From Diplonema japonicum (taxonomy: Eukaryota; Protista; Euglenozoa: Diplonemea), in NCBI GenBank assembly GCA_964019335.1, contig OZ025696.1:372001-436000 (forward strand): DNA of 64,000 nucleotides. Direction: 5' to 3'. Shown here one piece after another: positions 9,211-63,187 of the stretch. How positions within the stretch are numbered: the first letter of the stretch is position 1; each line of letters starts with the position of its first letter. The position numbers and the translations under genes are program-made. A model generated the notes under the pieces. The model was not told the origin of the DNA. It saw only the letters and a list, made by a program, of their open reading frames with translations, and ran no database searches.

Positions 9211-12200
9211 TCACACAGACACAGACTCCATTGGCCGCATTGGTGTAGACTCTTCTGGTACCAGCTTCATGAACTCATGTATGGAGGGGTTATCGTCGTA
9301 CCGCTTCCTCCTCTTCATGATGGTAGCCATTATAATCCCGCAGATGGCAAGGAGCCCGCCCAGGATGCCGAGGATGACAGGGAGCCAGTTGAAGGAGTCG
9401 TCGTCCCCGCACTTCTCGACAGGCCTCCCCGTCGCTGGTTCCTTGCTGCCCTTCTTGCAGGTGCACGTGTAGTCCTTCACAGAGTCGAAGGTCTTCATCG
9501 GGTCCTCGCACTCCTGCTCCTCCCCACACGGCCCTGACGAAGACGAACCCGACGACGGTGCCTCCAACCCGTCCTTCCGCACGAAGCACTCGTCGTACCC
9601 GCACGACCCCACAGGCCCGTTCTCCCTCGACCCTGTCCCCCACCCGCAGCTGCAGCGGAAGCCCTTCTCAGTAGCCGTGCACTCTTCTCCCGCCTTGCAG
9701 GGGTCCGCCTCGCACCCGGGAGCCTCCGCCCCGACCTTGCAGTCCGTCACAGCCTCCCCGGTTGCCTTCGACGTCCCCTCCTTGCACGAGCACACGAAGT
9801 CCCCGGTGCTCCCCGCAGTCTGCACAGGGTCCGTGCACACCTGGTCCGCCCCACAGGGACTGCTGCTGCACTCGTCGACAGGGCCAGCCTCGCACACCGC
9901 CACCATCCCAACAGCCGTCGTTCCCTTGCAGCTGCACTCGAAGTTCTTCTTTGGTGTCACTCGCTTGTCGTCGTCTTTGCAAGTCTGCTTGTCCCCGCAT
10001 GGGGAATCCTCACACTCATCCCTCTCGCACACCCCCACCTTGCCGCCGACACGCTTCCTGTCTGCGTCCGTCTTGCATGTGCACACGTAGTCGCCGCGAG
10101 AGTCCGCTGCTGTCTCGGGGTCCCTGCAGTTCTGGTCCCCCCCGCACAGGGACAGCCCGGTCTTCTTCGCCTCGGCACACTCGTCGAATTCGCACTCCGC
10201 ACGTTCCCCGACAGCCCTCACACTTGCCCCGCGACACATGCACACGAAGTCCCCCGCCTTCTCGCTCGGGTCGTGGCAGTCCTGGTCCGACCCGCACGGC
10301 TTCCTCCCGCACTCCGACCCCACACTCGCGGGGACGGGTGTCCCAGGTGCCCGTGTCTTCGGAACGTCCGTCGAAGGGGCCTTCGTCTGCCCAGGTGCCA
10401 GGGTCGAAGGCCTAGCCGTACTCGGGGCTTCTGTGGCAGGTGACGCCGTCTCACCAGGAACAAGGGTTTTTGGGACTTGCGTCGCGGGTGCCATGGTGTC
10501 AGGGGCCGCCGTCTCACCAGGAACAAGGGTTCTTGGGACCTGTGTCTTGGGTGCCATGGTGTCAGGGGCCGCCGTCTCACCAGGAACAAGGGTTTTTGGT
10601 ACTTCTGTCTTTGGCGCTGTCGTGTCAGGGGCTGCCGTCTCACCAGGAACAAGGGTTTTTGGGACCTGTGTCTTGGGTGCCATGGTGTCAGGGGCCGCCG
10701 TCTCACCAGGAACAAGTGTTTTTGGGACCTCTGTTTTGGGTGCATTCGTGTCAGGGGCCACCGTCTCACCAGGAACAAGGGTTTTTGGGACCTCTGTCTT
10801 GGGTGCATTCGTGTCAGGGGCCACCGTCTCACCAGGAACAAGTGTCTTCGGGACTTGTGTCTTGGGTGCCATGGTGTCAGGGGCTGCTGTCTCACCAGGA
10901 ACAAGGGTTGTTGGAACTTGCGTCCTGGGTGCTGTCGTGTCGGGTGCTCGTGTGGAAGGAGCTCTCGTGCTCGGCGCCGATGTCTCAGGTGCTGCTGTTG
11001 TTCCAGGTACTAGGGTTTCTGGAGCCTGAGTTCTCGGTGCCATCGTGTCTGGTGCTGCTGTCGTCCCAGGTGCAAGTGTTGACGGTGCTTGTGTTCGTGG
11101 TGCGTTCGTGGCTGGCGCTGCAGTGCTTGGGACCCCTGTATCCGGCGCCATCGTGTTTGGAGCAGCTGTTGTACCAGGGACAAGGGTTGCTGGAACCTGT
11201 GTTGCAGGGGCCACAGTGCTTGGTGCCGCTGTGGAAGGAACACCTGTGTCAGGTGCTGTCGTATCTGGAGCAGCTGTTTTACCGGGTGCGAGAGTAGAAG
11301 GAGTCTGTGTACTCGGTGCTGTCGTTGCAGGGGGCATCGTGTCAGGTGTCATAGTTGTTGGTGCCACTGTATCGGGTGCCGCTGTCTTCCCTGGTGCGAG
11401 AGTTACTGGGACCTGCGTGTCAGGTGCCATCGTTGCAGGGGGCATCGTGTTGGGCACTGTGGTGCTGGGTGCCATTGTGGCAGGTGCTGCCGTCTTCCCA
11501 GGTGCGAGCGTTGCTGGGACCTGCGTGCTTGGTGCCATCGTTGCAGGGGGAATCGTGTCGGGTGCCATGGTGTCAGGTGCCATTGTGGCAGGTGCTGCTG
11601 TCTTGCCAGGTGCAAGAGTTACAGGGGCCATCGTATCAGGTGCCATCGTGTCAGGTGCCGCTGTCTTGCCAGGTGCAAGTGTTGATGGTGCTTGCGTGCT
11701 TGGTGCCATCGTTGCAGGGGGCATTGTGTTGGGTGCCATGGTGTCGGGTGCCATTGTGGCAGGTGCTGCTGTCTTGCCAGGTGCAAGGGTTACAGGGGCC
11801 ATTGTATCAGGTGCCATTGTGTCAGGTGCTGCTGTCTTCCCAGGTGCAAGTGTTGCTGGTGCTTGCGTGTTTGGTGCCATCGTTGCAGGGGGCATTGTGT
11901 TTGGTGCCATAGTGTCGGGTGCCATTGTGGCAGGTGCTGCTGTCTTTCCAGGTGCAAGGGTTACAGGGGCCATTGTATCAGGTGCCATTGTGTCAGGTGC
12001 TGCTGTCTTGCCAGGTGCGAGGGTTGATGGTACTTGCGTGCTTGGTGCCATCGTTGCAGGGGGAATCGTGTTGGGTGCCATGGTGTCGGGTGCCATTGTG
12101 GCAGGTGCTGCTGTCTTTCCAGGTGCAAGAGTAACAGGGGCCATTGTATCAGGTGCCATTGTGTCAGGTGCTGCTGTCTTACCTGGTGCAAGTGTTGATG

Positions 12201-15200
12201 GTGCTTGCGTGCTTGGTGCCATCGTTGCAGGGGGCATTGTGTTGGGTGCCATGGTGTCAGGTGCCATTGTGGCAGGTGCTGCTGTCTTCCCAGGTGCAAG
12301 AGTTACAGGGGCCATTGTATCAGGTGCCATTGTGTCAGGTGCTGCTGTCTTCCCAGGTGCGAGGGTTGAAGGCGCTTGCGTGCTTGGTGCCATCGTTGCA
12401 GGGGGCATCGTGTTTGGTGCCATGGTGCCGGGCGCCATTGTGGCAGGTGCTGCTGTCTTTCCAGGTGCAAGGGTTACAGGGGCCATTGTATCAGGTGCCA
12501 TCGTGTCAGGTGCTGCTGTCTTGCCAGGTGCGAGAGTTGATGGTGCTTGCGTGCTTGGTGCCATCGTTGCAGGGGGAATCGTGTTTGGTGCCATGGTGTC
12601 AGGTGCCATTGTGGCAGGTGCTGCTGTCTTTCCAGGTGCGAGTGTAGAAGGTGTCTGCGTACTGGGGGCCGTTGTATCAGGTGCTATCGTGTCAGGTGCC
12701 GCTGTCTTCCCAGGTGCAAGTGTTGACGGTGCTTGCGTACTCGGTGCTGTCGTTGCAGGGGACATCGTGTTGGGTGCTGTGGTGTCAGGTGCCATTGTGT
12801 CAGGTGCTGCCGACTTGCCAGGTGCGAGGGTTGACGGGGTTTGTGTAATAGGTGCCATCGTTGCAGGGGGCATCGTGTTTGGTGCCATGGTGTCGGGTGC
12901 CATTGTAGTAGGCGCTGCTGTCTTGCCAGGTGTTAGAGTAACAGGTGTGGTTGTAGATGGTGCCTGCGTACTAGGGGCAGTTGTGTCGGGTGCCATAGTG
13001 TTTGGCGCCCCTGTGCTGGGTGCCATCGTGTCAGGTGCTGCTGTCTTGCCAGGTGCAAGAGTTGATGGGGTTTGCGTGCTTGGTGCTATTGTGTCGGGGG
13101 CAGTCGACTTCCCTGGTGCTTGTGTAGAAGGTGCCATTGTATCAGGTGCTGTAGTGATAGGTGCTGTAGTGTCTGGAGCCATCGTTTGAGGTGCTGCCGA
13201 TTTGCCTGGTGACAGAGTTGCAGGTGTTTGTGTAGAGGGTGCCGTTGTGTCCGGTGCCGTTGTGCCGGGTGCCGTTGTACTTGGGGCCATTGTGTTGGGT
13301 GCTGTTGTGCTCGGCGATGTGGTATCAGGCGGGCTCGTGTCGGGGGTCGTTGTGTCCGGTGGGTTTGTAGCAGGGGCTGCTGACTTCCCAGGACTGAGTG
13401 TTGGTGGTGTTTGCGTGTCAGGTGCCGAGGTATCAGGTGAGCTAGTAGAAGGGGCAGTCGTGCTGGGTGCCATTGTGCTGGGTGCACTTGTACCAGGCAC
13501 GGAAGTATCGGGTGCTGCGGTGATGGGTGCTGTGGTGCCGGGTGCTACAGTCACAGGTGAAGTAGTCACAGGAGCAGTGGTCATGGGTGAAGTGGTCACA
13601 GGCGCTGTAGTCACAGGAGCAGTGGTCATGGGTGAAGTGGTAGTCGGGGCAGTGGTCATGGGTGAAGTGGTAGTAGGAGCAGTGGTTGCAGGTGCTGTGG
13701 TAGTAGGAGCAGTGGTCATGGGTGCAGTGGTAGTAGGAGCAGTGGTCATGGGTGCTGTGGTAGTAGGAGCAGTGGTTGCAGGTGCTGTGGTAGTAGGAGC
13801 AGTGGTCATGGGTGCAGTGGTAGTAGGAGCAGTGGTCATGGGTGCTGTGGTAGTAGGAGCAGTGGTTGCAGGTGCTGTGGTAGTAGGAGCAGTGGTTGCA
13901 GGTGCTGTGGTAGTAGGAGCAGTGGTTGCAGGTGCTGTGGTAGTAGGAGCAGTGGTCATGGGTGCTGTGGTAGTAGGAACAGTGGTTGCAGGTGCTGTGG
14001 TAGTAGGAGCAGTGGTTGCAGGTGCTGTGGTAGTAGGAGCAGTGGTCATGGGTGCTGTGGTAGTAGGAACAGTGGTTGCAGGTGCTGTGGTAGTAGGTGC
14101 TGTTGTATCAGGAGCCGTTGTACTGGGTGCTGAAGTGGAGGGAGCTGTTGTCGTCGGTGCTGTAGTAGTAGGAGCACTGGTATCAGGTGCAGAAGTGGAA
14201 GGTGCATTTGTTGCAGGAGCATCCGTCGTTGCGGCTCCTTTGTCTTTGCAGAGAGCAGGGTTCTTGGTGTAAACAGAAGCAGCAGGTTCAATGAGGCCAC
14301 CAGAGCCCTGTTCGAAAGGCTTGGTACCAGTCCAGTAACCCTGACCCCTCTCACCGTACTGGCACCCGAACTCCCACCACTCACCATTCCAACCGAAAGG
14401 ACCAGGAGAGGGACACTTCACAGCAGCACACCCCATGGCATAGATGTTCGAGGAAGACATCTGTGTGTAGTGGGACACAACATTTCCATTACCCATGTCA
14501 GTGTTCCAGTTGTAGTCATCCTTCTCATCCCACCAGCTCTTCCCAAGGTACCCAGGGATGCCATCACTCATCAATGCCTCACAAGCAGAGCCAGCACAGT
14601 AAGCAAGGTTCTCACCAAGGTACTCGTACCCACCGACATCCTTGCGAACAGTGTTCTGGTCAGAGTGGGGCCAGTTCGAGTCACACTTCCCAATGTGTGC
14701 CGCAATGGTGGCCTCGATGGTCGTGTCCCACCTGATCTTGTGCATGTCCTTGGCGGGAGGGCTTGTGTTCGAACGCCATTCGTTGTGCTTGTCGAGGATG
14801 GCCTGCTCCCATGCCGAGAGTGTGCAAGTTGAACCACCGCCGCCGCCACCGCCACCACCACCACCTCCACCTCCACCACCACCACCAGAGGAAGGTGCTG
14901 AGGTAGCAGGTGCAGGGGTAGAAGGTGCCGATGTGACAGGAGGGGAGTTTCCATCCTCGCAGAGAGCAGGGTTCTTGGTGTAAACAGAGGAAGCAGGTTC
15001 AATGAGGCCACCAGAGCCTTGTTCGAATGGCTTGGTACCAGTCCAGTAACCCTGACCCCTCTCACCGTACTGGCACCCGAACTCCCACCACTCACCATTC
15101 CAACCGAAAGGACCAGGAGAGGGACACTTCACAGCAGCGCACCCCATGGCATAGATGTTCGAGGAAGACATCTGTGTGTAGTGGGACACAACATTTCCAT

Positions 15201-15582
15201 TACCCATGTCAGTGTTCCAGTTGTAGTCATCCTTCTCATCCCACCAGCTCTTCCCAAGGTACCCAGGGATGCCATCACTCATCAATGCCTCACAAGCAGA
15301 GCCAGCACAGTAAGCAAGGTTCTCACCAAGGTACTCGTACCCACCGACATCCTTGCGAACAGTGTTCTGGTCAGAGTGGGGCCAGTTCGAGTCACACTTC
15401 CCAATGTGTGCCGCAATGGTGGCCTCGATGGTCGTGTCCCACCTGATCTTGTGCATGTCCTTGGCGGGAGGGCTTGTGTTCGAACGCCATTCGTTGTGCT
15501 TGTCGAGGATGGCCTGCTCCCATGCCGAGAGTGCGGGGCATGTCGCAGACAGGACAGCGCTGACGGCTAGTGTCAGCAACAT
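9211..15582 (-). CDS. Surface protein A: signal peptide, 2 CAP domains (type I), ~1300-aa mucin stalk, EGF-like Cys-rich region, TM, tail (2123 aa)
   Basis: CAP motifs HNEWR, GENLA, SHYTQM and FGCQY; TxAP repeats; DEC..PCG..QxCxDP..DFxCxC repeats; WLPVILGILGGLLAICGII TM followed by basic residues. Confidence 0.95.
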   Translation of the reverse strand: MLLTLAVSAVLSATCPALSAWEQAILDKHNEWRSNTSPPAKDMHKIRWDTTIEATIAAHIGKCDSNWPHSDQNTVRKDVGGYEYLGENLAYCAGSACEALMSDGIPGYLGKSWWDEKDDYNWNTDMGNGNVVSHYTQMSSSNIYAMGCAAVKCPSPGPFGWNGEWWEFGCQYGERGQGYWTGTKPFEQGSGGLIEPASSVYTKNPALCEDGNSPPVTSAPSTPAPATSAPSSGGGGGGGGGGGGGGGGGGSTCTLSAWEQAILDKHNEWRSNTSPPAKDMHKIRWDTTIEATIAAHIGKCDSNWPHSDQNTVRKDVGGYEYLGENLAYCAGSACEALMSDGIPGYLGKSWWDEKDDYNWNTDMGNGNVVSHYTQMSSSNIYAMGCAAVKCPSPGPFGWNGEWWEFGCQYGERGQGYWTGTKPFEQGSGGLIEPAASVYTKNPALCKDKGAATTDAPATNAPSTSAPDTSAPTTTAPTTTAPSTSAPSTTAPDTTAPTTTAPATTVPTTTAPMTTAPTTTAPATTAPTTTAPATTVPTTTAPMTTAPTTTAPATTAPTTTAPATTAPTTTAPATTAPTTTAPMTTAPTTTAPMTTAPTTTAPATTAPTTTAPMTTAPTTTAPMTTAPTTTAPATTAPTTTSPMTTAPTTTSPMTTAPVTTAPVTTSPMTTAPVTTSPVTVAPGTTAPITAAPDTSVPGTSAPSTMAPSTTAPSTSSPDTSAPDTQTPPTLSPGKSAAPATNPPDTTTPDTSPPDTTSPSTTAPNTMAPSTTAPGTTAPDTTAPSTQTPATLSPGKSAAPQTMAPDTTAPITTAPDTMAPSTQAPGKSTAPDTIAPSTQTPSTLAPGKTAAPDTMAPSTGAPNTMAPDTTAPSTQAPSTTTPVTLTPGKTAAPTTMAPDTMAPNTMPPATMAPITQTPSTLAPGKSAAPDTMAPDTTAPNTMSPATTAPSTQAPSTLAPGKTAAPDTIAPDTTAPSTQTPSTLAPGKTAAPATMAPDTMAPNTIPPATMAPSTQAPSTLAPGKTAAPDTMAPDTMAPVTLAPGKTAAPATMAPGTMAPNTMPPATMAPSTQAPSTLAPGKTAAPDTMAPDTMAPVTLAPGKTAAPATMAPDTMAPNTMPPATMAPSTQAPSTLAPGKTAAPDTMAPDTMAPVTLAPGKTAAPATMAPDTMAPNTIPPATMAPSTQVPSTLAPGKTAAPDTMAPDTMAPVTLAPGKTAAPATMAPDTMAPNTMPPATMAPNTQAPATLAPGKTAAPDTMAPDTMAPVTLAPGKTAAPATMAPDTMAPNTMPPATMAPSTQAPSTLAPGKTAAPDTMAPDTMAPVTLAPGKTAAPATMAPDTMAPDTIPPATMAPSTQVPATLAPGKTAAPATMAPSTTVPNTMPPATMAPDTQVPVTLAPGKTAAPDTVAPTTMTPDTMPPATTAPSTQTPSTLAPGKTAAPDTTAPDTGVPSTAAPSTVAPATQVPATLVPGTTAAPNTMAPDTGVPSTAAPATNAPRTQAPSTLAPGTTAAPDTMAPRTQAPETLVPGTTAAPETSAPSTRAPSTRAPDTTAPRTQVPTTLVPGETAAPDTMAPKTQVPKTLVPGETVAPDTNAPKTEVPKTLVPGETVAPDTNAPKTEVPKTLVPGETAAPDTMAPKTQVPKTLVPGETAAPDTTAPKTEVPKTLVPGETAAPDTMAPKTQVPRTLVPGETAAPDTMAPATQVPKTLVPGETASPATEAPSTARPSTLAPGQTKAPSTDVPKTRAPGTPVPASVGSECGRKPCGSDQDCHDPSEKAGDFVCMCRGASVRAVGERAECEFDECAEAKKTGLSLCGGDQNCRDPETAADSRGDYVCTCKTDADRKRVGGKVGVCERDECEDSPCGDKQTCKDDDKRVTPKKNFECSCKGTTAVGMVAVCEAGPVDECSSSPCGADQVCTDPVQTAGSTGDFVCSCKEGTSKATGEAVTDCKVGAEAPGCEADPCKAGEECTATEKGFRCSCGWGTGSRENGPVGSCGYDECFVRKDGLEAPSSGSSSSGPCGEEQECEDPMKTFDSVKDYTCTCKKGSKEPATGRPVEKCGDDDSFNWLPVILGILGGLLAICGIIMATIMKRRKRYDDNPSIHEFMKLVPEESTPMRPMESVSV
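13545..14170. repeat. Coding 15-bp tandem repeat (TTAPx pentapeptide) in the gene A stalk
   Basis: Repeats of ggtgctgtggtagta/ggagcagtggttgca/ggagcagtggtcatg. Confidence 0.95.
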
Positions 15583-16116
15583 CGTTAAATGTGTTTAAAC
15601 CTAAGTACGGTACTAGCTAGCGTTCAGATGGGAGGACAGAAGAAAAAGAAGATAGAAGAGGGGAGCGGATGAACGAGGTAAGCACTTTGCATAACGTTTG
15701 TTCACATCATGCAAGACAGAAGCTTGCCGTCATATCATAGGGGCTCGGGGCTTAGGGGGAAACAAAGCGTTTTTTTTTTTCTTTTTTTTTTTTGTTGTTG
15801 TTGTGACACCAAAGCAAGTGTTTATTTAAAAATCGCTAAGGTGGTAGGTTTCCCTTTTCTTTTTTATTTTGCTTTATTTATTTTTTATTTTTTTTTTCCT
15901 TTAATGAGTGCAGTGAGCGACCCCGTAGTTATAAGAAGGGAAACTTTAAAAAAAATGTAGGAGGGAAAGGCAAAAAAAGGGGGGTTATCTTCATTGTTTT
16001 CTAGTAGCACAAACATGGGGGCTACGAGTTTGTTCTGTTTTACCTAATAAAAAGAGATGTAAAAAGCTGGTGTTGGTGTTCACCATAGAAAGAAAAAAGA
16101 AACGATAACCTCTTGG

Positions 16117-16159
<43 letters not shown>

Positions 16160-16202
16160 AAATGAGGGAGGGAAAATACTGGACTGAGGTAGTGTCACCC
16201 AG

Positions 16203-24255: not shown

Positions 24256-25719
24256 CTTATTTTATATGGTTTACCTTATAGTGTGTTGTGGAGGCAGAGG
24301 AGGAAGACCGCAACCCCGTAGTAGATGACTTGCGACTACTAGGCATTCCTCATTCAAGGAGAATAATTGCAATCATCGATCCTCATCACGACGCAAGTTC
24401 AAAAGATTCCCCATCCTCTTCAAGATAGGCTGCCCAAAGGCAATCAGACTGTCCAGTCCAGAGTGGGCAAATGCTATGATGGAGGCATAGGGGTGGAGAT
24501 ATGTCATGAATCTTCTTAAAACAACTAGAACCAAGTTACTGAAGAAAGTAGCGGAGGTGTTGCAGATATAACTAAATGAATAAAAATGGGTCGATATAAC
24601 ACGAATCTCACTCAACGAAAGAGAAAGGGTAGTAAAAAAAGAAGAGAAAAAAAAAGAAAAAAAAGGGAAAAAGAAAAAGAAAGGAAGATGGAAAAATAGG
24701 GAGGAAGAAGTGGGGCGGAGTCTATGCAAAGACGAAACAAAAAAAAAAAAAAAAAAAAACTGTATTAAAAAAAAGTAAAAGTTAGGTCTTTTTTACCACT
24801 TTTTTTTTTTTTTTTTTGGGAACGAAAACAAATAAGAAGCGGCGGTCTAAATTTCAACAAAAAAAGAAAATCTTTTTTTAATAATTCTTCCATTCTTTAA
24901 GGCAACGAAAAGAACAGAGAGAAGACAAAATTAGACTTATAAAGAAAAGTAGAAAACAGAGGACAAAATGCCCCTTTTCTGCGAGCGGCCTTCGAGAATC
25001 TGATGAAGAAAATAATCAGTGAGGTGGACCGGCAGCATTAAAAAAAGAGGGTAGACAGGGGAGGATATGGTGTATGTTACTCTTTTTTTTTGTTTTACAC
25101 CAGATAAAAAAAAGGGGGGGGGGAAGGGGGAAAAAAAGAAAGCAAGTGAATTATTATTCGAAAAAAGAAAAGAGGGGAGGAGGAAAACCATTTCTTTTTT
25201 TGATTTCTTTGTAAGTTTTACTTCATTCACTGCACCCCCCATATTAATAATTAAAAAAAATGTGGACGAACCCTTTTGGCCCAAACAGGGGTGCTGAATT
25301 AAGTAAATAATAAAATTATAAATTTTTATATCTTTTTTTTTTCCATTTTTATTTCCCCCTCTTTCTTTTTTTTTTCTTCAAAAAAAAACAAATACAAGTG
25401 TTTTTCATCATAGGCCTGAAGAGAAGGGGGGAGGGGGGGTCCATTTTCATCAAATTTCCCCTTTGCTTTTCTTGTGCTCGAACGAATTTAGCCCCCCCCC
25501 CCCCCCCGATGCAAGCAGTTTCTCTCCTCTAAAATTTAAAAACAGGAAAAGAAAAAAACAAAAAACCTTGTGTGTGTGTGTGTGTTTTTTTTCCCCTTCT
25601 TTTCTTCTTTTTGTTTGTCATATTCATACAGAAAAAAAAGGGGGGGGGGGAAGCACCCCCAAAATCTGCAAAAAAAAAGGCGATGTTCCTTTAAAAAAAA
25701 AAAAAAAAAAAAAAAAAGA

Positions 25720-46843: not shown

Positions 46844-47240
46844 GGTGTGTGTAGGTAACCTGATGTGATAGAGTAAAATCAAGTAATAAATTAGAACAGC
46901 AAAAGTAGAGCACAAGCATTGGGGCTGTAAGTAGGGGGGGGGGGGGGGAAGAAGAAAAGTCAGCTAGTTTGGAAAAAAAGATGGGTCTGCTTTTGATAGA
47001 CTAGGGAAGATGTAAAAGAATAAAATAAAAAGGGGGGGGGAAGGAAAAAGAAAAACGAAATTATAATAGATTCCGTGCCAAATGCATGCTGCAACAAAGA
47101 GCATAACTTATGAAGGAAGACCCTCATATGTATGTATAAAATTGGTTCTCAAGGGGGGGGGGGGGGGGGTGGTAAAGTGGGTTTTTTCAAATTCGGAAAT
47201 GCAGAACACTTACACCATGTAAAACGTCCCTTTCTCGACA

Positions 47241-54526: not shown

Positions 54527-54550
54527 TGCTGCTTCATAGTCAGCCCTCGT

Positions 54551-56951
54551 TCAATGTCTCGGTGTCGAGGCTCCTTGGTGTAGCGATATCGGGGCCGGTC
54601 CGCCTGTGATCTGTAATGGGACAATCTCTGCTGTTCCAGGGGTGCGTCTTTTCGGTGTGTCTGTGTGGATCTCCCCACCTTCCCTATCCGCATAAGACGC
54701 AGTTCTCTTTGTCGTCCGTAGGGATCGCACATCCTCCTGCAGGCTGTTCATCGTCATCGTGACCTTCTCGATGAAGCTGCTGATCTTCCCCAGCTGCCCC
54801 GTCACGCCTTCCATCTTCTCGTGAAGCGTGCCTACCTCCCTGCTGAGCGTCGCCATCCTGTTGTCGACACTCACGATCGACTGCATCATGCTGGCTGTTT
54901 TCCGTTCCAGCTCCACAATCCGCGTCTCCGACTCCCGCCGTTCCACAGCGTACTCTTCTTCCTTCTTCTTCCGCCACAGCTCAAATTCGTCGGCCGTCAT
55001 GCCACCGTGTCCTCTTGTCGGCAGCTGAGGTTGTGCTGGGGGTCGCGGGGCTGGTGCCAGCGGCTTCTCGGTTGGTGTTGTCATCTCAATGTCAATCTGC
55101 TCCGGTGTGGGTGCCACCTCAGTCTGCTGTTTCTTCGTCGCAGGGGCTTTGGCGGCATCATTCGCAACTCCTGTAGTCGTCGCCTGCTTCTTGTCTGTGG
55201 CCTCCGGCTCTTGCTTCCTCGGGCCCGCCCACTTCACGTTGTCAGGAAGTGTGTTTCTTCCTTCTCTCGTCTTCTTCTTTGCCTTCACGATTGGTGTGTG
55301 AGGGCGTATCGTCCATAGCATCCGTCTGATGTTGAGGGCCAGGTCGGGGGGTGGTCCATCTGCTGACACCGCCCAGGACCTTCTTCTGCCGTAGGTGATC
55401 AGTCCTCTAACCGCCTTGACCCTCCACCCCCAGGCCTCTAGCCTCCCTTCCAGTTCGATCCCGTTGATGTCGACGGGCACTCCCTCCACTTGGTAAAGCG
55501 AGCCTCTCTCTGCAGCCGCCTCCACACGCATCGAAGCGTACCTGTCTTCGATCACCCTTTGGATGTCACGTAAGGCATCCCGTGGGGCACGAATGCCGTA
55601 CGTGATTATCTCCCCCCGGAGTTTGTACGTCGCACCCAGGCCTCCGACCTCAACTGCCAGCTGTTGCACCTTCTTGAGGGGGGGTTCCTTCGAGCCAGAG
55701 TACGGGCAGTAGGTCTGTGGCCTCGTATCTCTGCCTGACCATCACGTCTTCCTCCCCGCTTTTGGTCAGCAGGGGCGCCGCATCGGCCCTCCTCACCGTT
55801 ATCGGGACCTGCACCATCCCGTGGCTCTTCGAGCCTCTGCCGAGCACGAATCTCCCCTTGAGGCGGCGCTTCACCCATGCTTCCATGGCGAGTCTGGCCT
55901 TACCTTCCGGGTCCTTCGTCGTCTTCACCAAGTATAGCTCCGAGCTGTACTGCGCCGCCGTGTCCTCGTCACCTTCTTTGTCGGCGGCCTCCACTTCTAT
56001 CTGCTCCGCAGCCGCGTCCGTCTTTGATGTCCGAAACATCCGCCTCGCTGCGACACCTTTGCCTTCCTGCACCGATAGCAGCACCTCCATGTTCGTCCCT
56101 TTGTAGAAGGGGAGCCGCGACCACGACACCATCGTCGGCCTGTCATCTGCCTCCTTCAGCCAGCTCGCCGCCGCCGTTTCCTCACCATGTGGTACTTGGT
56201 AGACCGCCCTGGTAACAGGCGTTTCCATTCCCTCCCATGGCAGGACACGCATCGTCCATCCGTCCTCCATCAGCTCGCCTTCAGTTGTCTTCTTGCGGCT
56301 GTCTCCCTTCCAAGGGCTTCGCATTGGCACGGGGAATAGTCTTGGAGGGTCGTACGGTGTCGCCTCCGGCTCCTCGTCCTCGTCATCTCCCTCGAAGCAC
56401 ACAAAGTGTCCCTCTGCGTATCCCAAGCATATCCTCCCAGCACTGGGGTCTGCGTGTACTGCTGCCGGCCTCGTGGTTGACACCGCCAGCTTCCCGTCTC
56501 GCTCGGTGTACACCAGGAAGGTCCTTCCGGTGACCCTCGCCATCATGGCAATCATCAGAGCATCACCCCATGCCCCGCGCCTTGCGGCCGCCGTCTTGTA
56601 CTCCTGCCACATAGCAGGTTTTTCCTCCTCACTGCCCAGCATCAGGTTCGACAGGTCCTCCCTGTCCAGCTCCGCCACTGCTGCCGCTCTCAGCCCTCCT
56701 GCGGCATCCTTCCCCTCCCTGCCATGTATGCACATGGCCGTCGCTTCGTACAGGCACTCCCCTTCCGCTCCCGCTGGGCTCAGCGTCTTCAAGCCCACCA
56801 GCTTGGCAAGACGCCTTACCGCTTCCTTCACTACTGCTCCTCCTGGCCCGGTGGGTTTGCTGCCAGTCTTAGAGGACTTGACACCCAGGGGCTGCCGCGT
56901 GGAGGCCCCACCGTTACCAGAATTGGCACTTCCTTTGTTTGTCTTGTTCAT
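54551..56951 (-). CDS. LINE-B ORF1: OTU-like protease, ORF1 core, coiled coil (~800 aa; +1 frameshift at C7 run 55678-55684)
   Basis: EGECLYEA..LR..W.EY..GAWGD..I..A..FLVY..ICLGYAEGHF. Removing one C joins LWLEGTP to LKKVQQLAVEVGG. Confidence 0.8.
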
Positions 56952-57934: not shown

Positions 57935-60900
57935 TTAGAGTTTGAACGCCTCCATTTCTCCACTTTGAGCAGAGTACTCTGGTTCCGTGTAAGTCATAAA
58001 GTCACCAATGCTAGGCCCACCGCTACGTCTTTTGACTGCCACCGCTGCTGCTATCCCGCAGATGGCAAGGAGCCCGCCCAGGATGCCGAGGATGACAGGG
58101 AGCCAGTTGAAGGAGTCGTCGTCCCCGCACTTCTCGACAGGCCTCCCCGTCGCTGGTTCCTTGCTGCCCTTCTTGCAGGTGCACGTGTAGTCCTTCACAG
58201 AGTCGAAGGTCTTCATCGGGTCCTCGCACTCCTGCTCCTCCCCACACGGCCCTGACGAAGACGAACCCGACGACGGTGCCTCCAACCCGTCCTTCCGCAC
58301 GAAGCACTCGTCGTACCCGCACGACCCCACAGGCCCGTTCTCCCTCGACCCTGTCCCCCACCCGCAGCTGCAGCGGAAGCCCTTCTCAGTAGCCGTGCAC
58401 TCTTCTCCCGCCTTGCAGGGGTCCGCCTCGCACCCGGGAGCCTCCGCCCCGACCTTGCAGTCCGTCACAGCCTCCCCGGTTGCCTTCGACGTCCCCTCCT
58501 TGCACGAGCACACGAAGTCCCCGGTGCTCCCCGCAGTCTGCACAGGGTCCGTGCACACCTGGTCCGCCCCACAGGGACTGCTGCTGCACTCGTCGACAGG
58601 GCCAGCCTCGCACACCGCCACCATCCCAACAGCCGTCGTTCCCTTGCAGCTGCACTCGAAGTTCTTCTTTGGTGTCACTCGCTTGTCGTCGTCTGTGCAA
58701 GTCTGCTTGTCCCCGCATGGGGAATCCTCACACTCATCCCTCTCGCACACCCCCACCTTGCCGCCGACACGCTTCCTGTCTGCGTCCGTCTTGCATGTGC
58801 ACACGTAGTCGCCGCGAGAGTCCGCTGCTGTCTCGGGGTCCCTGCAGTTCTGGTCCCCCCCGCACAGGGACAGCCCGGTCTTCTTCGCCTCGGCACACTC
58901 GTCGAATTCGCACTCCGCACGTTCCCCGACAGCCCTCACACTTGCCCCGCGACACATGCACACGAAGTCCCCCGCCTTCTCGCTCGGGTCGTGGCAGTCC
59001 TGGTCCGACCCGCACGGCTTCCTCCCGCACTCCGACCCCACACTCGCGGGGACGGGTGTCCCAGGTGCCCGTGTCTTCGGAACGTCCGTCGAAGGGGCCT
59101 TCGTCTGCCCAGGTGCCAGGGTCGAAGGCCTAGCCGTACTCGGGGCTTCTGTGGCAGGTGACGCTGTCTCACCAGGAACAAGGGTTTTTGGGACTTGCGT
59201 CGCGGGTGCCATGGTGTCAGGGGCTGCCGTCTCACCAGGAACAAGGGTTCTTGGGACCTGTGTCTTGGGTGCCATGGTGTCAGGGGCCGCCGTCTCACCA
59301 GGAACAAGGGTTTTTGGTACTTCTGTCTTTGGCGCTGTCGTGTCAGGGGCTGCCGTCTCACCAGGAACAAGGGTTTTTGGGACCTGTGTCTTGGGTGCCA
59401 TGGTGTCAGGGGCTGCCGTCTCACCAGGAACAAGTGTGGTCGGTGCTTCTGTTCTCGGTGCCGTCGTGTCTGGGGCACTTGTGGTCCCAGGTGTCCGAGT
59501 CACAGGTGCAGTGGTTTTAGGAGCCATTGTGTTTGGAGCCGCTGTTTCACCAGGAACAATGGTCGATGGAATCACAGTCACTGGCACTATAGTTTTTGGT
59601 GCACCCGTGTCAGGAGCACCGGTTGAAGGAGCAATTGTGCTAGGGGCAGAGGTATCAGGTGCATTAGTCTTCAGTACTTTCGGTGATCTCGTGACTGGAG
59701 CGTCTGTGATAGGAACTGACGCCATCGGTGAATTTGTAGTCGGCGAACTTGTAACAGGAACTCCTGTGGCAGGTGCATTGGTTGATGGTGCCCTTGTGTT
59801 AGGAGCGCTTGTCGCGGGTGAAGACGTGGTACCTGCAGCTTTGTCCTTGCACAGACCAGGGTTCTTGGTGAAAACAGAAGAATCAGGTTCAATGAGGCCA
59901 CCAGAGCCTTGTTCGAAAGGCTTGGTACCAACCCAGTAACCCTGACCCCTCTCACCGTACTGGCACCCGAACTCCCACCACTCACCGTTCCAACCCCAAG
60001 GACCAGGAGAGGGACACTTCACAGCAGCACACCCCATGGCATAGATGTTCGAGGAAGACATCTGTGTGTAGTGAGAAGTGACACCACCATTAGAACTGTC
60101 AGAAGCCCAGTTGTAGTCATCCTTCTCATCCCACCAGCTCTGTCCAAGGTACCCAGGAGTGCCATCACTCATCAATGCCTCACAAGCAGTACCAGCACAG
60201 TAAGCAAGGTTCTCACCAAGGTACTCAAACCCACCGACATCCTTGCGAACAGTGTTCTGGTCAGAGTGGGGCCAGTTCGAGTCACACCTCCCAATGTGTC
60301 CACGGATGGTCGCAGCAATGTTGGTGTCCCACCTGACCTTGTGCATGTCCTTGGCGGGAGGGCTTGTGTTGGAACGCCATTCGTTGTGCTTGTCGAGGAT
60401 GGCCTGCTCCCAAACAGACAGAGGGCAAGATGAACCACCGCCACCACCACCACCGCCAGAAGAAGAAGGTGCCGAGGTAACAGGAGCAGGAGGTGCTGGT
60501 GTTGGGTTTGAGGGAGGGGAGTTTCCATCATTGCACAGACCAGGGTTCTTGGTGAAAACAGAAGAATCAGGTTCAATGAGGCCACCAGAGCCCTGTTCGA
60601 AAGGCTTGGTACCAACCCAGTAACCCTGACCCCTCTCACCGTACTGGCACCCGAACTCCCACCACTCACCATTCCAACCCCAAGGACCAGGAGAGGGACA
60701 CTTCACAGCAGCACACCCCATGGCATAGATGTTCGAGGAAGACATCTGTGTGTAGTGGGAAGTGACACCACCATTAGAACTGTCAGAGGCCCAGTTGTAG
60801 TCATCCTTCTCATCCCACCAGCTCTGTCCAAGGTACCCAGGAGTGCCATCACTCATCAATGCCTCACAAGCAGTACCAGCACAGTAAGCAAGGTTCTCAC

Positions 60901-63187
60901 CAAGGTACTCGTACCCACCGACATCCTTGCGAACAGTGTTCTGGTCAGAGTGGGGCCAGTTCGAGTCACACCTCCCAATGTGTCCACGGATGGTCGCAGC
61001 AATGTTGGTGTCCCACCTGACCTTGTGCATGTCCTTGGCGGGAGGGCTTGTGTTGGAACGCCATTCGTTGTGCTTGTCAAGGATGGCCTGCTCCCAAACA
61101 GACAGAGGGCAAGATGAACCACCACCACCACCACCGCCAGAAGAAGGTGCCGAGGTGACAGGAGCAGGAGGTGCTGGTGTTGGGTTTGAGGGAGGGGAGT
61201 TTCCATCATTGCACAGACCAGGGTTCTTGGTGAAAACAGAAGAATCAGGTTCAATGAGGCCACCAGAGCCCTGTTCGAAAGGCTTGGTACCAACCCAGTA
61301 ACCCTGACCCCTCTCACCGTACTGGCACCCGAACTCCCACCACTCACCGTTCCAACCCCAAGGACCAGGAGAGGGACACTTCACAGCAGCACACCCCATG
61401 GCATAGATGTTCGAGGAAGACATCTGTGTGTAGTGGGAAGTGACACCACCATTAGAACTGTCAGAAGCCCAGTTGTAGTCATCCTTCTCATCCCACCAGC
61501 TCTGCCCAAGGTACCCAGGAGTGCCATCACTCATCAATGCCTCACAAGCAGTACCAGCACAGTAAGCAAGGTTCTCACCAAGGTACTCGTACCCACCGAC
61601 ATCCTTGCGAACCGTGTTTTGGTCAGAGTGGGGCCAGTTCGAGTCACACCTCCCAATGTGTCCACGGATTGTCGCAGCAATGTTGGTGTCCCACCTGACC
61701 TTGTGCATGTCCTTGGCGGGAGGGCTTGTGTTGGAACGCCATTCGTTGTGCTTGTCAAGGATGGCCTGCTCCCAAACAGACAGAGGGCAAGATGAACCAC
61801 CGCCACCACCACCACCGCCAGAAGAAGAAGGTGCCGAGGTAACAGGAGCAGGAGGTGCTGGTGTTGGGTTTGAGGGAGGGGAGTTTCCATCATTGCACAG
61901 ACCAGGGTTCTTGGTGTAAACAGAAGAATCAGGTTCAATGAGGCCACCAGAGCCCTGTTCAAAGGGCTTGGTACCAACCCAGTAACCCTGACCCCTCTCA
62001 CCGTACTGGCACCCGAACTCCCACCACTCACCATTCCAACCCCAAGGACCAGGAGAGGGACACTTCACAGCAGCACACCCCATGGCATAGATGTTCGAGG
62101 AAGACATCTGTGTGTAGTGAGAAGTGACACCACCATTAGAACTGTCAGAGGCCCAGTTGTAGTCATCCTTCTCATCCCACCAGCTCTGCCCAAGGTACCC
62201 AGGAGTGCCATCACTCATCAATGCCTCACAAGCAGTACCAGCACAGTAAGCAAGGTTCTCACCAAGGTACTCAAACCCACCGACATCCTTGCGAACAGTG
62301 TTCTGGTCAGAGTGGGGCCAGTTCGAGTCACACCTCCCAATGTGTCCACGGATGGTCGCAGCAATGTTGGTGTCCCACCTGACCTTGTGCATGTCCTTGG
62401 CGGGAGGGCTTGTGTTGGAACGCCATTCGTTGTGCTTGTCGAGGATGGCCTGCTCCCAAACAGACAGAGGGCAAGATGAACCACCACCACCACCGCCAGA
62501 AGAAGAAGGTGCCGATGTGACAGGAGCAGGAGGTGGTGTTGGATTCGAAGGAGGGGAGTTCCCATCATTGCACAGACCAGGGTTCTTGGTGAAAACAGAA
62601 GAATCAGGTTCAATGAGGCCACCAGAGCCCTGTTCGAAAGGCTTGGTACCAACCCAGTAACCCTGACCCCTCTCACCGTACTGGCACCCGAACTCCCACC
62701 ACTCACCGTTCCAACCCCAAGGACCAGGAGAGGGACACTTCACAGCAGCACACCCCATGGCATAGATGTTCGAGGAAGACATCTGTGTGTAGTGGGAAGT
62801 GACACCACCATTAGAACTGTCAGAGGCCCAGTTGTAGTCATCCTTCTCATCCCACCAGCTCTGCCCAAGGTACCCAGGAGTGCCATCACTCATCAATGCC
62901 TCACAAGCAGTACCAGCACAGTAAGCAAGGTTCTCACCAAGGTACTCAAACCCACCGACATCCTTACGAACAGTGTTCTGGTCAGAGTGGGGCCAGTTCG
63001 AGTCACACTTCCCAATGTGTCCACGGATGGTCGCAGCAATGTTGGTGTCCCACCTGACCTTGTGCATGTCCTTGGCGGGAGGGCTTGTGTTGGAACGCCA
63101 TTCGTTGTGCTTGTCAAGGATGGCCTGCTCCCACACTGAGAGTGTGCATGTCGCAGACAGTACACTGACGTAAAACGCCAGCAACAT
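57935..63187 (-). CDS. Surface protein E: 5 CAP domains (type II), ~265-aa stalk, EGF-like region, TM, tail
   Basis: Start at MLLAFYVS; same architecture as A-D. Confidence 0.95.
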   Translation of the reverse strand: MLLAFYVSVLSATCTLSVWEQAILDKHNEWRSNTSPPAKDMHKVRWDTNIAATIRGHIGKCDSNWPHSDQNTVRKDVGGFEYLGENLAYCAGTACEALMSDGTPGYLGQSWWDEKDDYNWASDSSNGGVTSHYTQMSSSNIYAMGCAAVKCPSPGPWGWNGEWWEFGCQYGERGQGYWVGTKPFEQGSGGLIEPDSSVFTKNPGLCNDGNSPPSNPTPPPAPVTSAPSSSGGGGGGSSCPLSVWEQAILDKHNEWRSNTSPPAKDMHKVRWDTNIAATIRGHIGRCDSNWPHSDQNTVRKDVGGFEYLGENLAYCAGTACEALMSDGTPGYLGQSWWDEKDDYNWASDSSNGGVTSHYTQMSSSNIYAMGCAAVKCPSPGPWGWNGEWWEFGCQYGERGQGYWVGTKPFEQGSGGLIEPDSSVYTKNPGLCNDGNSPPSNPTPAPPAPVTSAPSSSGGGGGGGGSSCPLSVWEQAILDKHNEWRSNTSPPAKDMHKVRWDTNIAATIRGHIGRCDSNWPHSDQNTVRKDVGGYEYLGENLAYCAGTACEALMSDGTPGYLGQSWWDEKDDYNWASDSSNGGVTSHYTQMSSSNIYAMGCAAVKCPSPGPWGWNGEWWEFGCQYGERGQGYWVGTKPFEQGSGGLIEPDSSVFTKNPGLCNDGNSPPSNPTPAPPAPVTSAPSSGGGGGGGSSCPLSVWEQAILDKHNEWRSNTSPPAKDMHKVRWDTNIAATIRGHIGRCDSNWPHSDQNTVRKDVGGYEYLGENLAYCAGTACEALMSDGTPGYLGQSWWDEKDDYNWASDSSNGGVTSHYTQMSSSNIYAMGCAAVKCPSPGPWGWNGEWWEFGCQYGERGQGYWVGTKPFEQGSGGLIEPDSSVFTKNPGLCNDGNSPPSNPTPAPPAPVTSAPSSSGGGGGGGGSSCPLSVWEQAILDKHNEWRSNTSPPAKDMHKVRWDTNIAATIRGHIGRCDSNWPHSDQNTVRKDVGGFEYLGENLAYCAGTACEALMSDGTPGYLGQSWWDEKDDYNWASDSSNGGVTSHYTQMSSSNIYAMGCAAVKCPSPGPWGWNGEWWEFGCQYGERGQGYWVGTKPFEQGSGGLIEPDSSVFTKNPGLCKDKAAGTTSSPATSAPNTRAPSTNAPATGVPVTSSPTTNSPMASVPITDAPVTRSPKVLKTNAPDTSAPSTIAPSTGAPDTGAPKTIVPVTVIPSTIVPGETAAPNTMAPKTTAPVTRTPGTTSAPDTTAPRTEAPTTLVPGETAAPDTMAPKTQVPKTLVPGETAAPDTTAPKTEVPKTLVPGETAAPDTMAPKTQVPRTLVPGETAAPDTMAPATQVPKTLVPGETASPATEAPSTARPSTLAPGQTKAPSTDVPKTRAPGTPVPASVGSECGRKPCGSDQDCHDPSEKAGDFVCMCRGASVRAVGERAECEFDECAEAKKTGLSLCGGDQNCRDPETAADSRGDYVCTCKTDADRKRVGGKVGVCERDECEDSPCGDKQTCTDDDKRVTPKKNFECSCKGTTAVGMVAVCEAGPVDECSSSPCGADQVCTDPVQTAGSTGDFVCSCKEGTSKATGEAVTDCKVGAEAPGCEADPCKAGEECTATEKGFRCSCGWGTGSRENGPVGSCGYDECFVRKDGLEAPSSGSSSSGPCGEEQECEDPMKTFDSVKDYTCTCKKGSKEPATGRPVEKCGDDDSFNWLPVILGILGGLLAICGIAAAVAVKRRSGGPSIGDFMTYTEPEYSAQSGEMEAFKL

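Follow-up and report, generated by a model that had tools for sequence, protein, structure and literature searches.

A diplonemid family of CAP-domain arrays on predicted membrane-tethered stalks: architecture, evolution and possible multivalent binding at the cell surface

The genome of Diplonema japonicum encodes a family of proteins in which near-identical CAP domains are strung in series ahead of a Thr/Pro/Ala stalk. Five of its genes (g1 to g5) lie in the window, by which we mean the whole stretch of 64,000 nucleotides of contig OZ025696.1 that was analysed, and these five are real tandem paralogues. They are adjacent intron-free ORFs on the minus strand, each counted from its first ATG, and all are intact across 4.6-6.9 kb. 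The encoded proteins (2123, 1850, 1544, 2283 and 1750 aa, from g1 to g5) share a single order of parts: a hydrophobic leader, the CAP units, the stalk, six EGF-like modules, one putative transmembrane (TM) helix and a tail. Our explanation, that these are paralogous tethered CAP arrays that bind a ligand at the cell surface and that evolve by recombination and conversion, is one that we consider moderately probable when taken as a whole. The ORF calls agree with the coordinates that the original prediction gave for all five genes. The features are as follows.

9211-15582, minus strand: g1, the 2-CAP gene, 2123 aa (ORF, translation, Pfam CAP in 2 stretches with E 1e-24)
Parts of g1, minus strand: CAP units 14248-15537; stalk 10321-14247 (1309 aa); EGF-like modules 9388-10320; TM helix and tail 9211-9387
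18703-24255, minus strand: g2, 4 type A CAP units, 1850 aa (ORF, Pfam, segment boundaries)
Parts of g2, minus strand: CAP units 21529-24210; stalk 19807-21528 (574 aa); EGF-like region 18874-19806; TM helix and tail 18703-18873
26883-32500, minus strand: LINE-type retrotransposon in the g2/g3 interval, outside the gene family (motif inspection of translations)
Parts of this LINE, minus strand: endonuclease-like ORF 29504-32500; reverse-transcriptase-like ORF 26883-29450; these resemble the endonuclease/reverse transcriptase ORF 50444-54526
33109-37743, minus strand: g3, 3 type A CAP units, 1544 aa (ORF, Pfam, segment boundaries)
Parts of g3, minus strand: CAP units 35635-37698; stalk 34228-35634 (469 aa); EGF-like region 33295-34227; TM helix and tail 33109-33294
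39992-46843, minus strand: g4, 6 type B CAP units, 2283 aa (ORF, Pfam, segment boundaries)
Parts of g4, minus strand: CAP units 42821-46804; stalk 41099-42820 (574 aa); EGF-like region 40166-41098; TM helix and tail 39992-40165
50444-56951, minus strand: LINE in the g4/g5 interval, outside the gene family (translation)
Parts of this LINE, minus strand: ORF with endonuclease and reverse transcriptase motifs 50444-54526; upstream ORFs 54551-55669 and 55650-56951
57935-63187, minus strand: g5, 5 type B CAP units, 1750 aa (ORF, Pfam, segment boundaries)
Parts of g5, minus strand: CAP units 59849-63148; stalk 59039-59848 (270 aa); EGF-like region 58106-59038; TM helix and tail 57935-58105

The CAP domains were identified both by sequence profile and by predicted structure. 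The Pfam profile PF00188 matches 2, 4, 3, 6 and 5 stretches in g1 to g5 (E 1e-24 to 9e-71), and whole proteins score 88-237 bits (cut-off 21.1), which bears out the 20 domains originally counted. An AlphaFold2 model of one CAP unit (pLDDT 94.4, pTM 0.90) forms an alpha-beta-alpha sandwich. When this model was compared to the PDB using Foldseek, 45 matches were found at E <= 0.001; all the matches listed are CAP proteins, the best being GLIPR1 (E 9e-12, TM 0.70), followed by snake CRISPs, SmVAL4 and Pry1. A search of the ESM Atlas gave nothing beyond generic CAP clusters, with low scores. The motifs PHS, GEN, WWDE and SHYTQ are invariant in 20 of 20 CAP units, and their His/Glu/Glu/His residues line up with the tetrad columns of GLIPR1 and of snake CRISPs, including pseudechetoxin. 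The earlier claim that this tetrad is retained in the CAP cleft is therefore true of every unit, and the tetrad is likewise invariant in alignment A6. Each unit also contains eight cysteines and is extended at its C-terminus by about 50 residues; this extension is common only to diplonemid and myxobacterial proteins. Successive units are joined by Pro/Ser/Gly linkers of 32-68 residues.

The CAP heads are of two types, A (g1-g3) and B (g4 and g5), and units within one type are 97-100% identical. There are 14 fixed differences between the types, six of which fall in residues 106-117, between Glu101 and His119 of the tetrad. Within types, dN/dS is 0.04 (B) and 0.13 (A), with dS of 0.066-0.079. 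Because dN/dS is low at such values of dS, the CAP units are neither brand new nor decaying. We also considered the caveolin-binding motif of the flexible loop, which is linked to sterols and has aromatic residues at positions 1, 3 and 8 (PMC10189770). In the arrays, this motif is incomplete: YNWNTDMG (type A) and YNWASDSS (type B) have an aromatic residue only at positions 1 and 3, with position 8 being Gly or Ser, respectively. Since only two-thirds of the aromatic motif is present, the sterol capture that had been proposed as a function is doubtful.

The stalks consist of 21-26% Thr, about 20% Pro and 16-20% Ala, and are presumably O-glycosylated in the manner of mucins. Their measured lengths of 270-1309 residues match the range of ~265 to ~1300 aa given previously, with the longest on the 2-CAP g1 and the shortest on the 5-CAP g5. 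In g1, the stalk DNA has tandem repeats with periods of 30, 63 and 171 nt, in up to 18 copies. Beneath the stalk are the six modules of six cysteines each, with the consensus xDEC-x3-PCG-x2-Q-x-C-x-DP-x8-DF-x-C-x-C-x13-C (39 modules, this genome). The EGF label, which is statistically weak, is based on how the cysteines are arranged, on weak profile similarity and on a similar predicted fold. For Pfam EGF the modules score 10.2 bits (E = 1), below the threshold of 21.5, while in a profile search against PDB sequences 23 of the 24 matches were EGF modules, with a best E of 0.01. A model of one module (pLDDT 92.6) was searched with Foldseek, and nearly all top matches were EGF domains of Notch or of factor VII/IX/X, with an rmsd of 1.7-2.8 A over 32-35 residues and, the domain being tiny, E >= 0.66. 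Pfam detected no lectin domain in the five proteins.

By inspection, the leaders, e.g., MLLTLAVSAVLSATC and MLLAFYVSVLSATC, are short and hydrophobic (about 12-15 residues), and a C-terminal hydrophobic stretch of 21-23 residues (VILGILGGLLAICGI...) is followed by residues rich in K/R. The tails of g1 to g5 are 31-36 aa long. Although their DNA has diverged, these tails and those of relatives all share a basic stretch of stop-transfer type and a [DEN]-F-[MLVF] motif, and all end with a hydrophobic residue. The original description as type I CAP-mucin-EGF membrane receptors thus stands as regards the CAP domains, the stalk and the six-cysteine modules, and is softer as regards the EGF assignment, the leader and the TM helix.

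These parts suggest a type I membrane glycoprotein in which 2-6 near-identical CAPs would be strung at the far end of the stalk; beneath it would come a rod of six EGF-like modules, one TM helix and, inside the cell, a short tail bearing conserved motifs. Its role would most probably be the stoichiometric, multivalent binding of an external ligand on the cell surface, by which the organism would attach to or capture a particle, cell or lipid-like molecule. Multivalent surface binding is a plausible role. Head types A and B differ chiefly in a loop next to the cleft of the CAP domain. Unequal recombination of repeat units and conversion between paralogues alter the number of CAPs and the length of the stalk, and purifying selection holds the CAP protein sequence near constant. 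The architecture fits the multivalent tethered display that was originally proposed, but the accompanying idea that avidity and reach are tuned is not supported: CAP number and stalk length have no clear relation (n = 5), two stalks are the same through conversion (see below) and a count of 4 is repeated.

An alternative that we consider unlikely is a protective or defensive coat, in which the proteins would chiefly form a mucin-type glycocalyx and the CAPs, instead of being receptors for one specific partner, would serve as stable caps, act against microbes or sequester sterols or lipids, as proposed for plant PR-1. Stalks of the length and Thr/Pro content given above dominate the proteins, plant CAP proteins sequester sterols (PMC10189770), and the genome encodes many other giant EGF-like surface proteins, all of which would suit a coat. 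Against it, the CAP units are under strong purifying selection, and the concentration of A/B differences in the cleft-side loop argues for a specific binding surface. The conserved motifs of the cytoplasmic tail also point to sorting or coupling and away from a passive coat, and the incomplete sterol-linked aromatic motif is a further point against this alternative.

Shedding is common among the membrane mucins of animals, and the anchor of the arrays might similarly be a delivery device, such that the ectodomain is cut in the stalk or EGF-like region and the CAP strings act remotely, as do the CAP proteins that parasites and fungi secrete. We judge this improbable. No cleavage motif was identified, and across genera both the TM helix and the tail are retained and carry shared motifs, which is unexpected for a disposable anchor. 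Release would nonetheless agree with the fact that most characterised CAP proteins are secreted (PMC10189770).

For the tethered binding arrays that we favour, variation in CAP count and stalk length looks like the result of ordinary unequal recombination and gene conversion. Within an array, the CAP units are 2-17 nt apart. Between g4 and g5, units correspond by position, with differences of 5 nt (c1-c1), 4 (c2-c2), 3 (c3-c3), 0 (c4-c4) and 1 (c5-c5). This position-wise match implies duplication of a whole array, followed by gain or loss of one unit, and it argues against collapse or inflation of the arrays by the assembler. In addition, g2 and g4 share an identical block:

18821-21610, minus strand: g2 copy of the identical 2,790-bp block (blastn 100% over 2708 nt, exact extension)
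40113-42902, minus strand: g4 partner of the block (blastn, exact extension)

The block spans the TM helix, the EGF-like region, the stalk and the last 82 nt of the final CAP unit. The adjoining 300 nt on the two sides have 30 and 219 mismatches. It is a recent gene-conversion or chimera tract, and because of its identity the g2 and g4 stalks are both 574 aa long. Similarity among the paralogues starts at the ATG and stops just past the TM helix, the flanks being unrelated; conversion is limited to coding sequence, of which this is a clear example in a trans-splicing genome. The fact that all CAP counts differ locally is an accident of unit gain and loss, not design.

The CAP counts rest on the assembly and on internal evidence, as reads gave short contigs only, none of which spans an array. 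It is highly improbable that the repeats of about 680 bp were misassembled, with g4 being chimeric, or that the gene copies are silent: although units are 97-100% identical within a type, the 2,790-bp block could in principle be a mis-join and the runs listed include neither an array-spanning read nor an RNA record, each g4 unit is 2-17 nt from its neighbours with the order of variants repeated in g5, five ORFs are intact with dN/dS far under 1, locus-specific pieces such as the c2/c3 linker (45405-45563) recur in runs of three separate studies, and an assembly of 62.5 Mb in only 132 contigs suggests long reads. None of the runs listed as holding the stretch is recorded as RNA, and a length-limited search of a protein database with the C-terminal 368 aa of g5 gave no transcript fragment in the searched length range.

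Two further close members of the family are present in the same genome, one on contig C1, which has 4 CAPs together with EGF-like modules and a TM helix, and the other on C47, which has one CAP, a stalk and a TM helix. The statement that no two of the five genes have the same CAP number is correct inside the cluster but does not extend to the genome, where the C1 gene, like g2, has 4. Five other protein predictions, from ENA assemblies and not from this genome, have 2, 3, 3, 6 and 8 CAPs; overall, the relatives in ENA assemblies combine 1-8 CAPs and a TM helix with either EGF-like modules or a mucin stalk. In Rhynchopus and Flectonema transcriptomes, the chassis of EGF-like modules and TM helix mostly carries 1-2 CAPs. 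All named relatives are diplonemids, and a D. japonicum protein from a transcript matches the genome at 100%; on these two grounds a kinetoplastid origin was rejected. The family is diplonemid-specific.

We compared the arrays to several known systems. GLIPR1 of vertebrates, a type I membrane protein that has one CAP domain and whose anchor is a TM helix at the C-terminus, is the best match by sequence and structure, having the same fold and tetrad. The arrays differ from it in that they have 2-6 CAPs, not one, on a long mucin stalk and EGF-like rod, and in the eight cysteines and the extension of about 50 residues of each unit. CLEC18 of vertebrates contains CAP, EGF, EGF-like and C-type lectin domains. 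Compared by domains, it resembles the arrays in joining CAP with EGF-type modules in one extracellular protein, but its CAP is single, it includes a C-type lectin domain, and it is not known to have a mucin stalk or TM helix. A likeness of working, not of kinship, is apparent with repeat-variable surface proteins such as the fungal Als/Flo adhesins, DMBT1/gp340 (SRCR domains with Ser/Thr/Pro spacers) and Trypanosoma cruzi mucins. In these systems, binding domains tip a Ser/Thr/Pro-rich stalk, repeat recombination shifts the copy number, and there are tandem clusters and gene conversion. However, the binding domains are unrelated, and the proteins have a GPI or cell-wall link as opposed to the TM helix and tail of the arrays.

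Multi-CAP proteins as such are already known, e.g., a protein with eight CAP domains in the green alga Raphidocelis subcapitata, and concatenated CAPs have been read in a review as a sign of stoichiometric function (PMC10189770). Other examples are Octopus vulgaris LOC115217114, with 6 CAPs, and P0018, with 10. P0018 and P0045 resemble the arrays in ending with a Thr-rich, Cys-rich stretch and a hydrophobic tail, and some proteins of this type may be surface-anchored. Nevertheless, the multi-CAP proteins of the alga and the octopus and P0018 show only 27-30% identity, have no such EGF-like rod or long Thr/Pro/Ala stalk before the membrane, have units that are far more divergent among themselves and, according to the tree, are unrelated in origin. 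In the literature that we searched on kinetoplastid, bodonid and diplonemid CAP, EGF or mucin surface proteins, the array architecture was not found described, consistent with the original remark that it was not a recognised one; a D. japonicum 'CRISP' gene is mentioned solely as an intron test case (PMC12621601).

The nearest relatives outside diplonemids are CAP lipoproteins of Polyangia (Myxococcota), from MAGs of Polyangiaceae, Sandaracinus and Myxococcales. They have 51-56% identity over all 191-193 residues of the CAP unit, keep the eight cysteines, the tetrad and the C-terminal extension, and have Gly/Ser-rich linkers ahead of the CAP domain. They differ in that they have one domain in 250-300 aa, a bacterial lipobox signal and ordinary bacterial gene neighbourhoods, and have no stalk, EGF-like modules or TM helix. 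In the tree, the Polyangia proteins and the diplonemid CAP units are reciprocally monophyletic sister groups, and the clade that unites them has an SH-aLRT of 99. The nearest named outgroups are eukaryotic GLIPR1-like proteins. Full-length identity of this degree makes an interdomain transfer between diplonemids and Polyangia likely, and, because the nearest named outgroups are eukaryotic, the direction leans toward a transfer from eukaryote to bacterium. The tie would then be a clean case of an extracellular domain exchanged between domains of life.

A bolder version of the binding hypothesis is that the arrays are copy-number-variable receptors of two specificities, with a CAP domain exchanged with predatory myxobacteria, that perform multivalent recognition or capture of prey, a partner or membrane lipid. 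We put this forward tentatively, as it is possible but doubtful. If true, the CAP fold would for the first time have a clear role as a receptor that is tethered and works by avidity, and this in a group of marine heterotrophic flagellates that ranks among the most abundant. What CAP proteins do biochemically is still debated, although they are widespread and of medical and agricultural importance (venoms, helminth vaccine antigens, plant PR-1). A natural series of predicted membrane-tethered arrays with 1 to 8 near-identical CAPs offers a direct test of the 'stoichiometric binder' idea, and the same series supplies two head types, distinguished by the loop at the side of the cleft, and has a close counterpart in bacteria. 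Diplonemids occur in very large numbers in the ocean, and at their cell surface the CAP arrays, along with the giant EGF-like proteins that this genome also encodes in number, are concrete candidates for adhesion, feeding or symbiont handling.

The genes are intron-free and have LINEs between them, and we therefore considered whether they originated as retrocopies. This is unlikely, as similarity extends only from the ATG to the TM helix, with no shared UTR. One ORF of the LINE between g4 and g5 (55650-56951) encodes an OTU protease domain (Pfam OTU, E 1.3e-5). The spliced-leader sequence is common to kinetoplastids and diplonemids, and its conserved 16-mer is abundant in the genome, with 252 matches versus 0 in the control.

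Five large open reading frames (ORFs), taken from the first ATG, encode proteins in which Pfam recognizes CAP domains (PF00188; CRISP/Antigen 5/PR-1), with whole-protein E-values from 1e-24 to 9e-71:

9211-15582, minus strand: g1, 2123 residues, 2 CAP stretches, stalk of 1309 residues
18703-24255, minus strand: g2, 1850 residues, 4 CAP stretches, stalk of 574 residues
33109-37743, minus strand: g3, 1544 residues, 3 CAP stretches, stalk of 469 residues
39992-46843, minus strand: g4, 2283 residues, 6 CAP stretches, stalk of 574 residues
57935-63187, minus strand: g5, 1750 residues, 5 CAP stretches, stalk of 270 residues

The coordinates, CAP counts and stalk lengths of the original prediction all agree with these ORFs, Pfam matches and segment lengths. 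The ORFs are continuous and require no spliced model, every large ORF in the window is on the same strand, and a pyrimidine tract and AG precede each of the five ATGs. The CAP repeat unit is exactly 193 residues long, starting with Cys-Pro/Thr-Leu-Ser and ending with Asn-Pro-Ala/Gly-Leu-Cys. Between units are Pro-, Ser- and Gly-rich linkers of 32-68 residues, in which Gly forms runs of 4-18. The last unit is followed by a Thr/Pro/Ala-rich stalk (Thr 21-26%, Pro approximately 20%), whose DNA consists of repeats with periods of 30, 63 and 171 nt. C-terminal to the stalk is a 311-residue region whose 36 cysteines are distributed over six modules. The proteins then continue with 21-23 hydrophobic residues and a basic cluster, and end in a 31-36-residue tail. 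These are real genes, and they belong to a diplonemid-specific family.

The CAP domains are genuine. In alignments of the unit to human GLIPR1 (E 2e-11) and to snake-venom CRISPs, the His, Glu, Glu and His of PHS, GEN, WWDE and SHYTQ fall on the cavity tetrad. These four motifs had been predicted to be retained, and indeed they are identical in 20/20 units. An AlphaFold2 model of a single unit, based on an 81-sequence alignment, has a mean pLDDT of 94.4, and its top structural matches are GLIPR1 (E 9e-12, TM 0.70), CRISPs, SmVAL4, Na-ASP-2 and yeast Pry1. Sterol binding in Pry1-type proteins has been tied to a caveolin-binding motif with aromatic residues at positions 1, 3 and 8 (PMC10189770). 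This motif is only partly present, as YNWNTDMG in the units of g1-g3 (type A) and YNWASDSS in those of g4 and g5 (type B).

The identity of the six cysteine-rich modules is less clear-cut. Pfam EGF scores 10.2 bits (E = 1) on this region against a threshold of 21.5. We gathered 39 modules of this type from the D. japonicum genome, whose consensus is xDEC-x3-PCG-x2-Q-x-C-x-DP-x8-DF-x-C-x-C-x13-C, and used 20 of them for a profile. EGF modules from Notch or from coagulation factors VII, IX and X account for 23 of its 24 matches to PDB sequences, with a best E-value of 0.01. A model of one module (pLDDT 92.6) has almost exclusively Notch and factor VII EGF modules as its nearest solved structures (rmsd 1.7-2.8 A over 32-35 residues), with E-values of at least 0.66 because the domain is so small. 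Compared to calcium-binding EGF modules, the D. japonicum modules have a six-residue insertion. The predicted EGF label is thus reasonable but weak: the six-cysteine pattern and both sets of neighbours speak for it, while the Pfam score is below threshold. Because of this combination, we call the modules EGF-like.

At the DNA level, the 20 CAP units are 97-100% identical within a type and approximately 90% identical between types. Nei-Gojobori estimates for the units are as follows:

within type A: dS 0.079, dN 0.010, dN/dS 0.13
within type B: dS 0.066, dN 0.003, dN/dS 0.04
type A versus type B: dS 0.20, dN 0.067, dN/dS 0.33

Given these values, the units have been under strong purifying selection for some time. 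The units of g4 and g5 match by position, with the first to fifth differing by 5, 4, 3, 0 and 1 nt. Units inside one array differ by 2-17 nt; the sixth g4 unit is closest to the fifth of the same gene. It follows that a whole array was duplicated and that one unit was then gained or lost. Collapse or inflation of the arrays by the assembler would be hard to reconcile with this pattern. Contigs of four runs from three studies partly cover the g4 array, including the linker between its second and third units, and none spans it. In this linker, the sequence from public run X2 carries 6 extra nt at 45443 (CCACCG on the plus strand, two Gly codons), meaning that the length of the poly-Gly linker is polymorphic among samples. 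Among the listed runs that contain the stretch, none is on record as RNA, and no transcript fragments of the C-terminal part were found in the protein database within the length limits searched.

A 2,790-bp block is 100% identical between g2 (18821-21610) and g4 (40113-42902). It extends from the transmembrane (TM) helix through the EGF-like region and the stalk and takes in the final 82 nt of the last CAP unit, so g4 amounts to type B heads on the stalk of g2. Among the five paralogues, similarity sets in precisely at the ATG and tapers off inside the cytoplasmic tail. The tails, whose DNA has diverged, and the upstream flanks are:

9211-9310, minus strand: tail of g1; 15583-15800: upstream flank of g1
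18703-18800, minus strand: tail of g2; 24256-24473: upstream flank of g2
33109-33220, minus strand: tail of g3; 37744-37961: upstream flank of g3
39992-40090, minus strand: tail of g4; 46844-47061: upstream flank of g4
57935-58030, minus strand: tail of g5; 63188-63405: upstream flank of g5

When we compared these upstream flanks, and likewise the 3' flanks, among the paralogues, we found no shared sequence except low-complexity runs. Between the genes, the DNA is AT-rich and unrelated, and upstream of each ATG it has long T/C tracts and then AG. Homogenisation of the genes seems to be confined to coding sequence.

Types A and B are fixed for different residues at 14 positions. Six of these lie in residues 106-117 (NTDMGNGNVV in A, ASDSSNGGVT in B), the loop between Glu101 and His119 of the tetrad; the clustering has a hypergeometric p of 3e-5, although this interval was chosen after looking at the data. 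By alignment, the loop corresponds to the flexible loop of Pry1-type proteins, which contains the caveolin-binding motif and has been proposed to determine ligand preference (PMC10189770). We infer that the two types may bind different ligands. All tails of the D. japonicum proteins and of relatives, including those in ENA assemblies, keep a basic cluster, [DEN]-F-[MLVF] 5-15 residues later and a hydrophobic last residue (e.g., ...ESVSV, ...EAIKI, ...ETFKL and ...EGVTL). These shared features may constitute a conserved signal for sorting or coupling.

The D. japonicum assembly (62.5 Mb, 132 contigs; draft diplonemid genomes range from 35 to 118 Mb, PMC12621601) contains at least 56 CAP matches. 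Two close members lie outside the window, which is part of contig C49. The gene on C1 combines 4 CAP units and (TPP)n linkers with six or more EGF-like modules, a TM helix and a tail; the C47 protein, of 357 residues, has a single CAP, a (TTP)n stalk and a TM helix. CAP heads that are more distant top giant EGF-like module arrays on C7, C28 and C61. The proposal that no two paralogues share a CAP number therefore holds inside the five-gene cluster but not genome-wide, as the C1 gene also has four. Moreover, five draws from 1-8 would all differ by chance about 1 time in 5, and the suggested tuning of reach and avidity has no support beyond ordinary repeat instability.

The closest outside relatives are proteins of ENA assemblies, which belong to other genomes since they are at most 79% identical to that of D. 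japonicum. P0002, P0001, P0003 and P0004 have 8, 6, 3 and 3 CAPs, respectively, with a mucin stalk and TM helix and without EGF-like modules; P0005 has 2 CAPs, 21 EGF-like modules and a TM helix, and P0009 has 1, 5 and a TM helix. The EGF-like and TM chassis occurs in several diplonemid transcriptomes, mostly with 1-2 CAPs and once with a PAN domain, so relatives of the chassis are transcribed. All named relatives are diplonemid: Rhynchopus humris, R. euleeides, Flectonema neradi, Sulcionema specki, Diplonema japonicum and D. papillatum.

Outside diplonemids, the nearest relatives are bacterial. Among 1.84 billion representative proteins, only 13 match one CAP unit at E <= 1e-30. After the diplonemid proteins come proteins of 250-300 residues that are 49-54% identical across the whole unit and keep 8/8 cysteines, the tetrad and the unusual C-terminal extension. 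We also scanned bacteria and archaea (one genome per species). All 12 loci detected (L007-L018), in 12 genomes, are in Myxococcota, with identities of 51-56% to the full length of the CAP unit (14248-14826). They come from MAGs of Polyangiaceae, Polyangiales, Polyangia, Sandaracinus and Myxococcales, and some are located on a 9.07-Mb chromosome or a 1.43-Mb contig. The products are lipoproteins that have a lipobox and linkers rich in Gly and Ser, and on the Polyangiales chromosome (approximately 60% GC) the neighbours are FecR-type, AraC-type, peptidase S9 and desaturase genes.

In a tree of 174 CAP domains (LG+G4), the 23 diplonemid units form one clade (SH-aLRT 97), as do the 14 myxobacterial sequences (SH-aLRT 97), and both join with one metagenomic protein (SH-aLRT 99). 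This joint clade makes interdomain transfer of the CAP unit very likely. The next named neighbours are all eukaryotic, namely GLIPR1-like proteins of sea cucumber and scallop and one protist protein, and on this basis we lean toward transfer from eukaryote to bacterium. The N-terminal leaders of the diplonemid family members P0003, P0005, P0008, P0009 and L004:878-1951 end in L-A-G-C or similar, resembling a bacterial lipobox, and the Cys at the leader's end also begins every internal CAP unit. This resemblance may be a relic of an origin shared with the myxobacterial lipoproteins, or coincidence.

Among vertebrate proteins, GLIPR1 is a membrane-anchored single-CAP protein and CLEC18 combines CAP with EGF. 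The combination of CAP array, mucin stalk, EGF-like rod and TM helix had not been recognized as described, and we likewise found no account of it, or of diplonemid CAP surface proteins, in the literature searched. A D. japonicum 'CRISP' gene has been used only to validate introns (PMC12621601). Multi-CAP proteins are known, with up to eight CAPs in an uncharacterised protein of the green alga Raphidocelis, and CAP concatenation has been read as a sign of a stoichiometric, not catalytic, role (PMC10189770). Our other multi-CAP matches, an octopus protein with 6 CAPs and proteins with 4 and 10 CAPs, are 27-30% identical to the unit. From its predicted layout, a multivalent binding role at the cell surface is plausible for this family.

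Other elements accompany the genes. The g2/g3 and g4/g5 spacers each contain LINE-type retrotransposon sequence. ORFs outside the gene family include:

5487-6056, same strand as g1-g5: small ORF with ankyrin repeats (Pfam Ank, E 3e-14)
50444-54526: endonuclease and reverse-transcriptase ORF of the g4/g5 LINE
55650-56951: upstream ORF of this LINE, with an OTU-like cysteine protease domain (Pfam, E 1.3e-5)

Pfam recognizes nothing in the remaining ORFs downstream of g1 (1429-5078). In the genome, we counted 252 copies of the 16-nt 3' end of the euglenozoan spliced leader (TTTCTGTACTTTATTG) and 0 of the reversed control; the copies are scattered across most contigs, frequently close to contig ends and in some cases next to one another. 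Many giant open frames (approximately 1,450-3,560 aa) with tens of identical-type EGF-like modules are present on C28, C61, C34, C7, C47 and C80, several with a single, more divergent CAP head. The D. japonicum transcriptome protein P0164 (EukProt EP01064) corresponds to the giant ORF on C80, with 100% identity over residues 1-1564.
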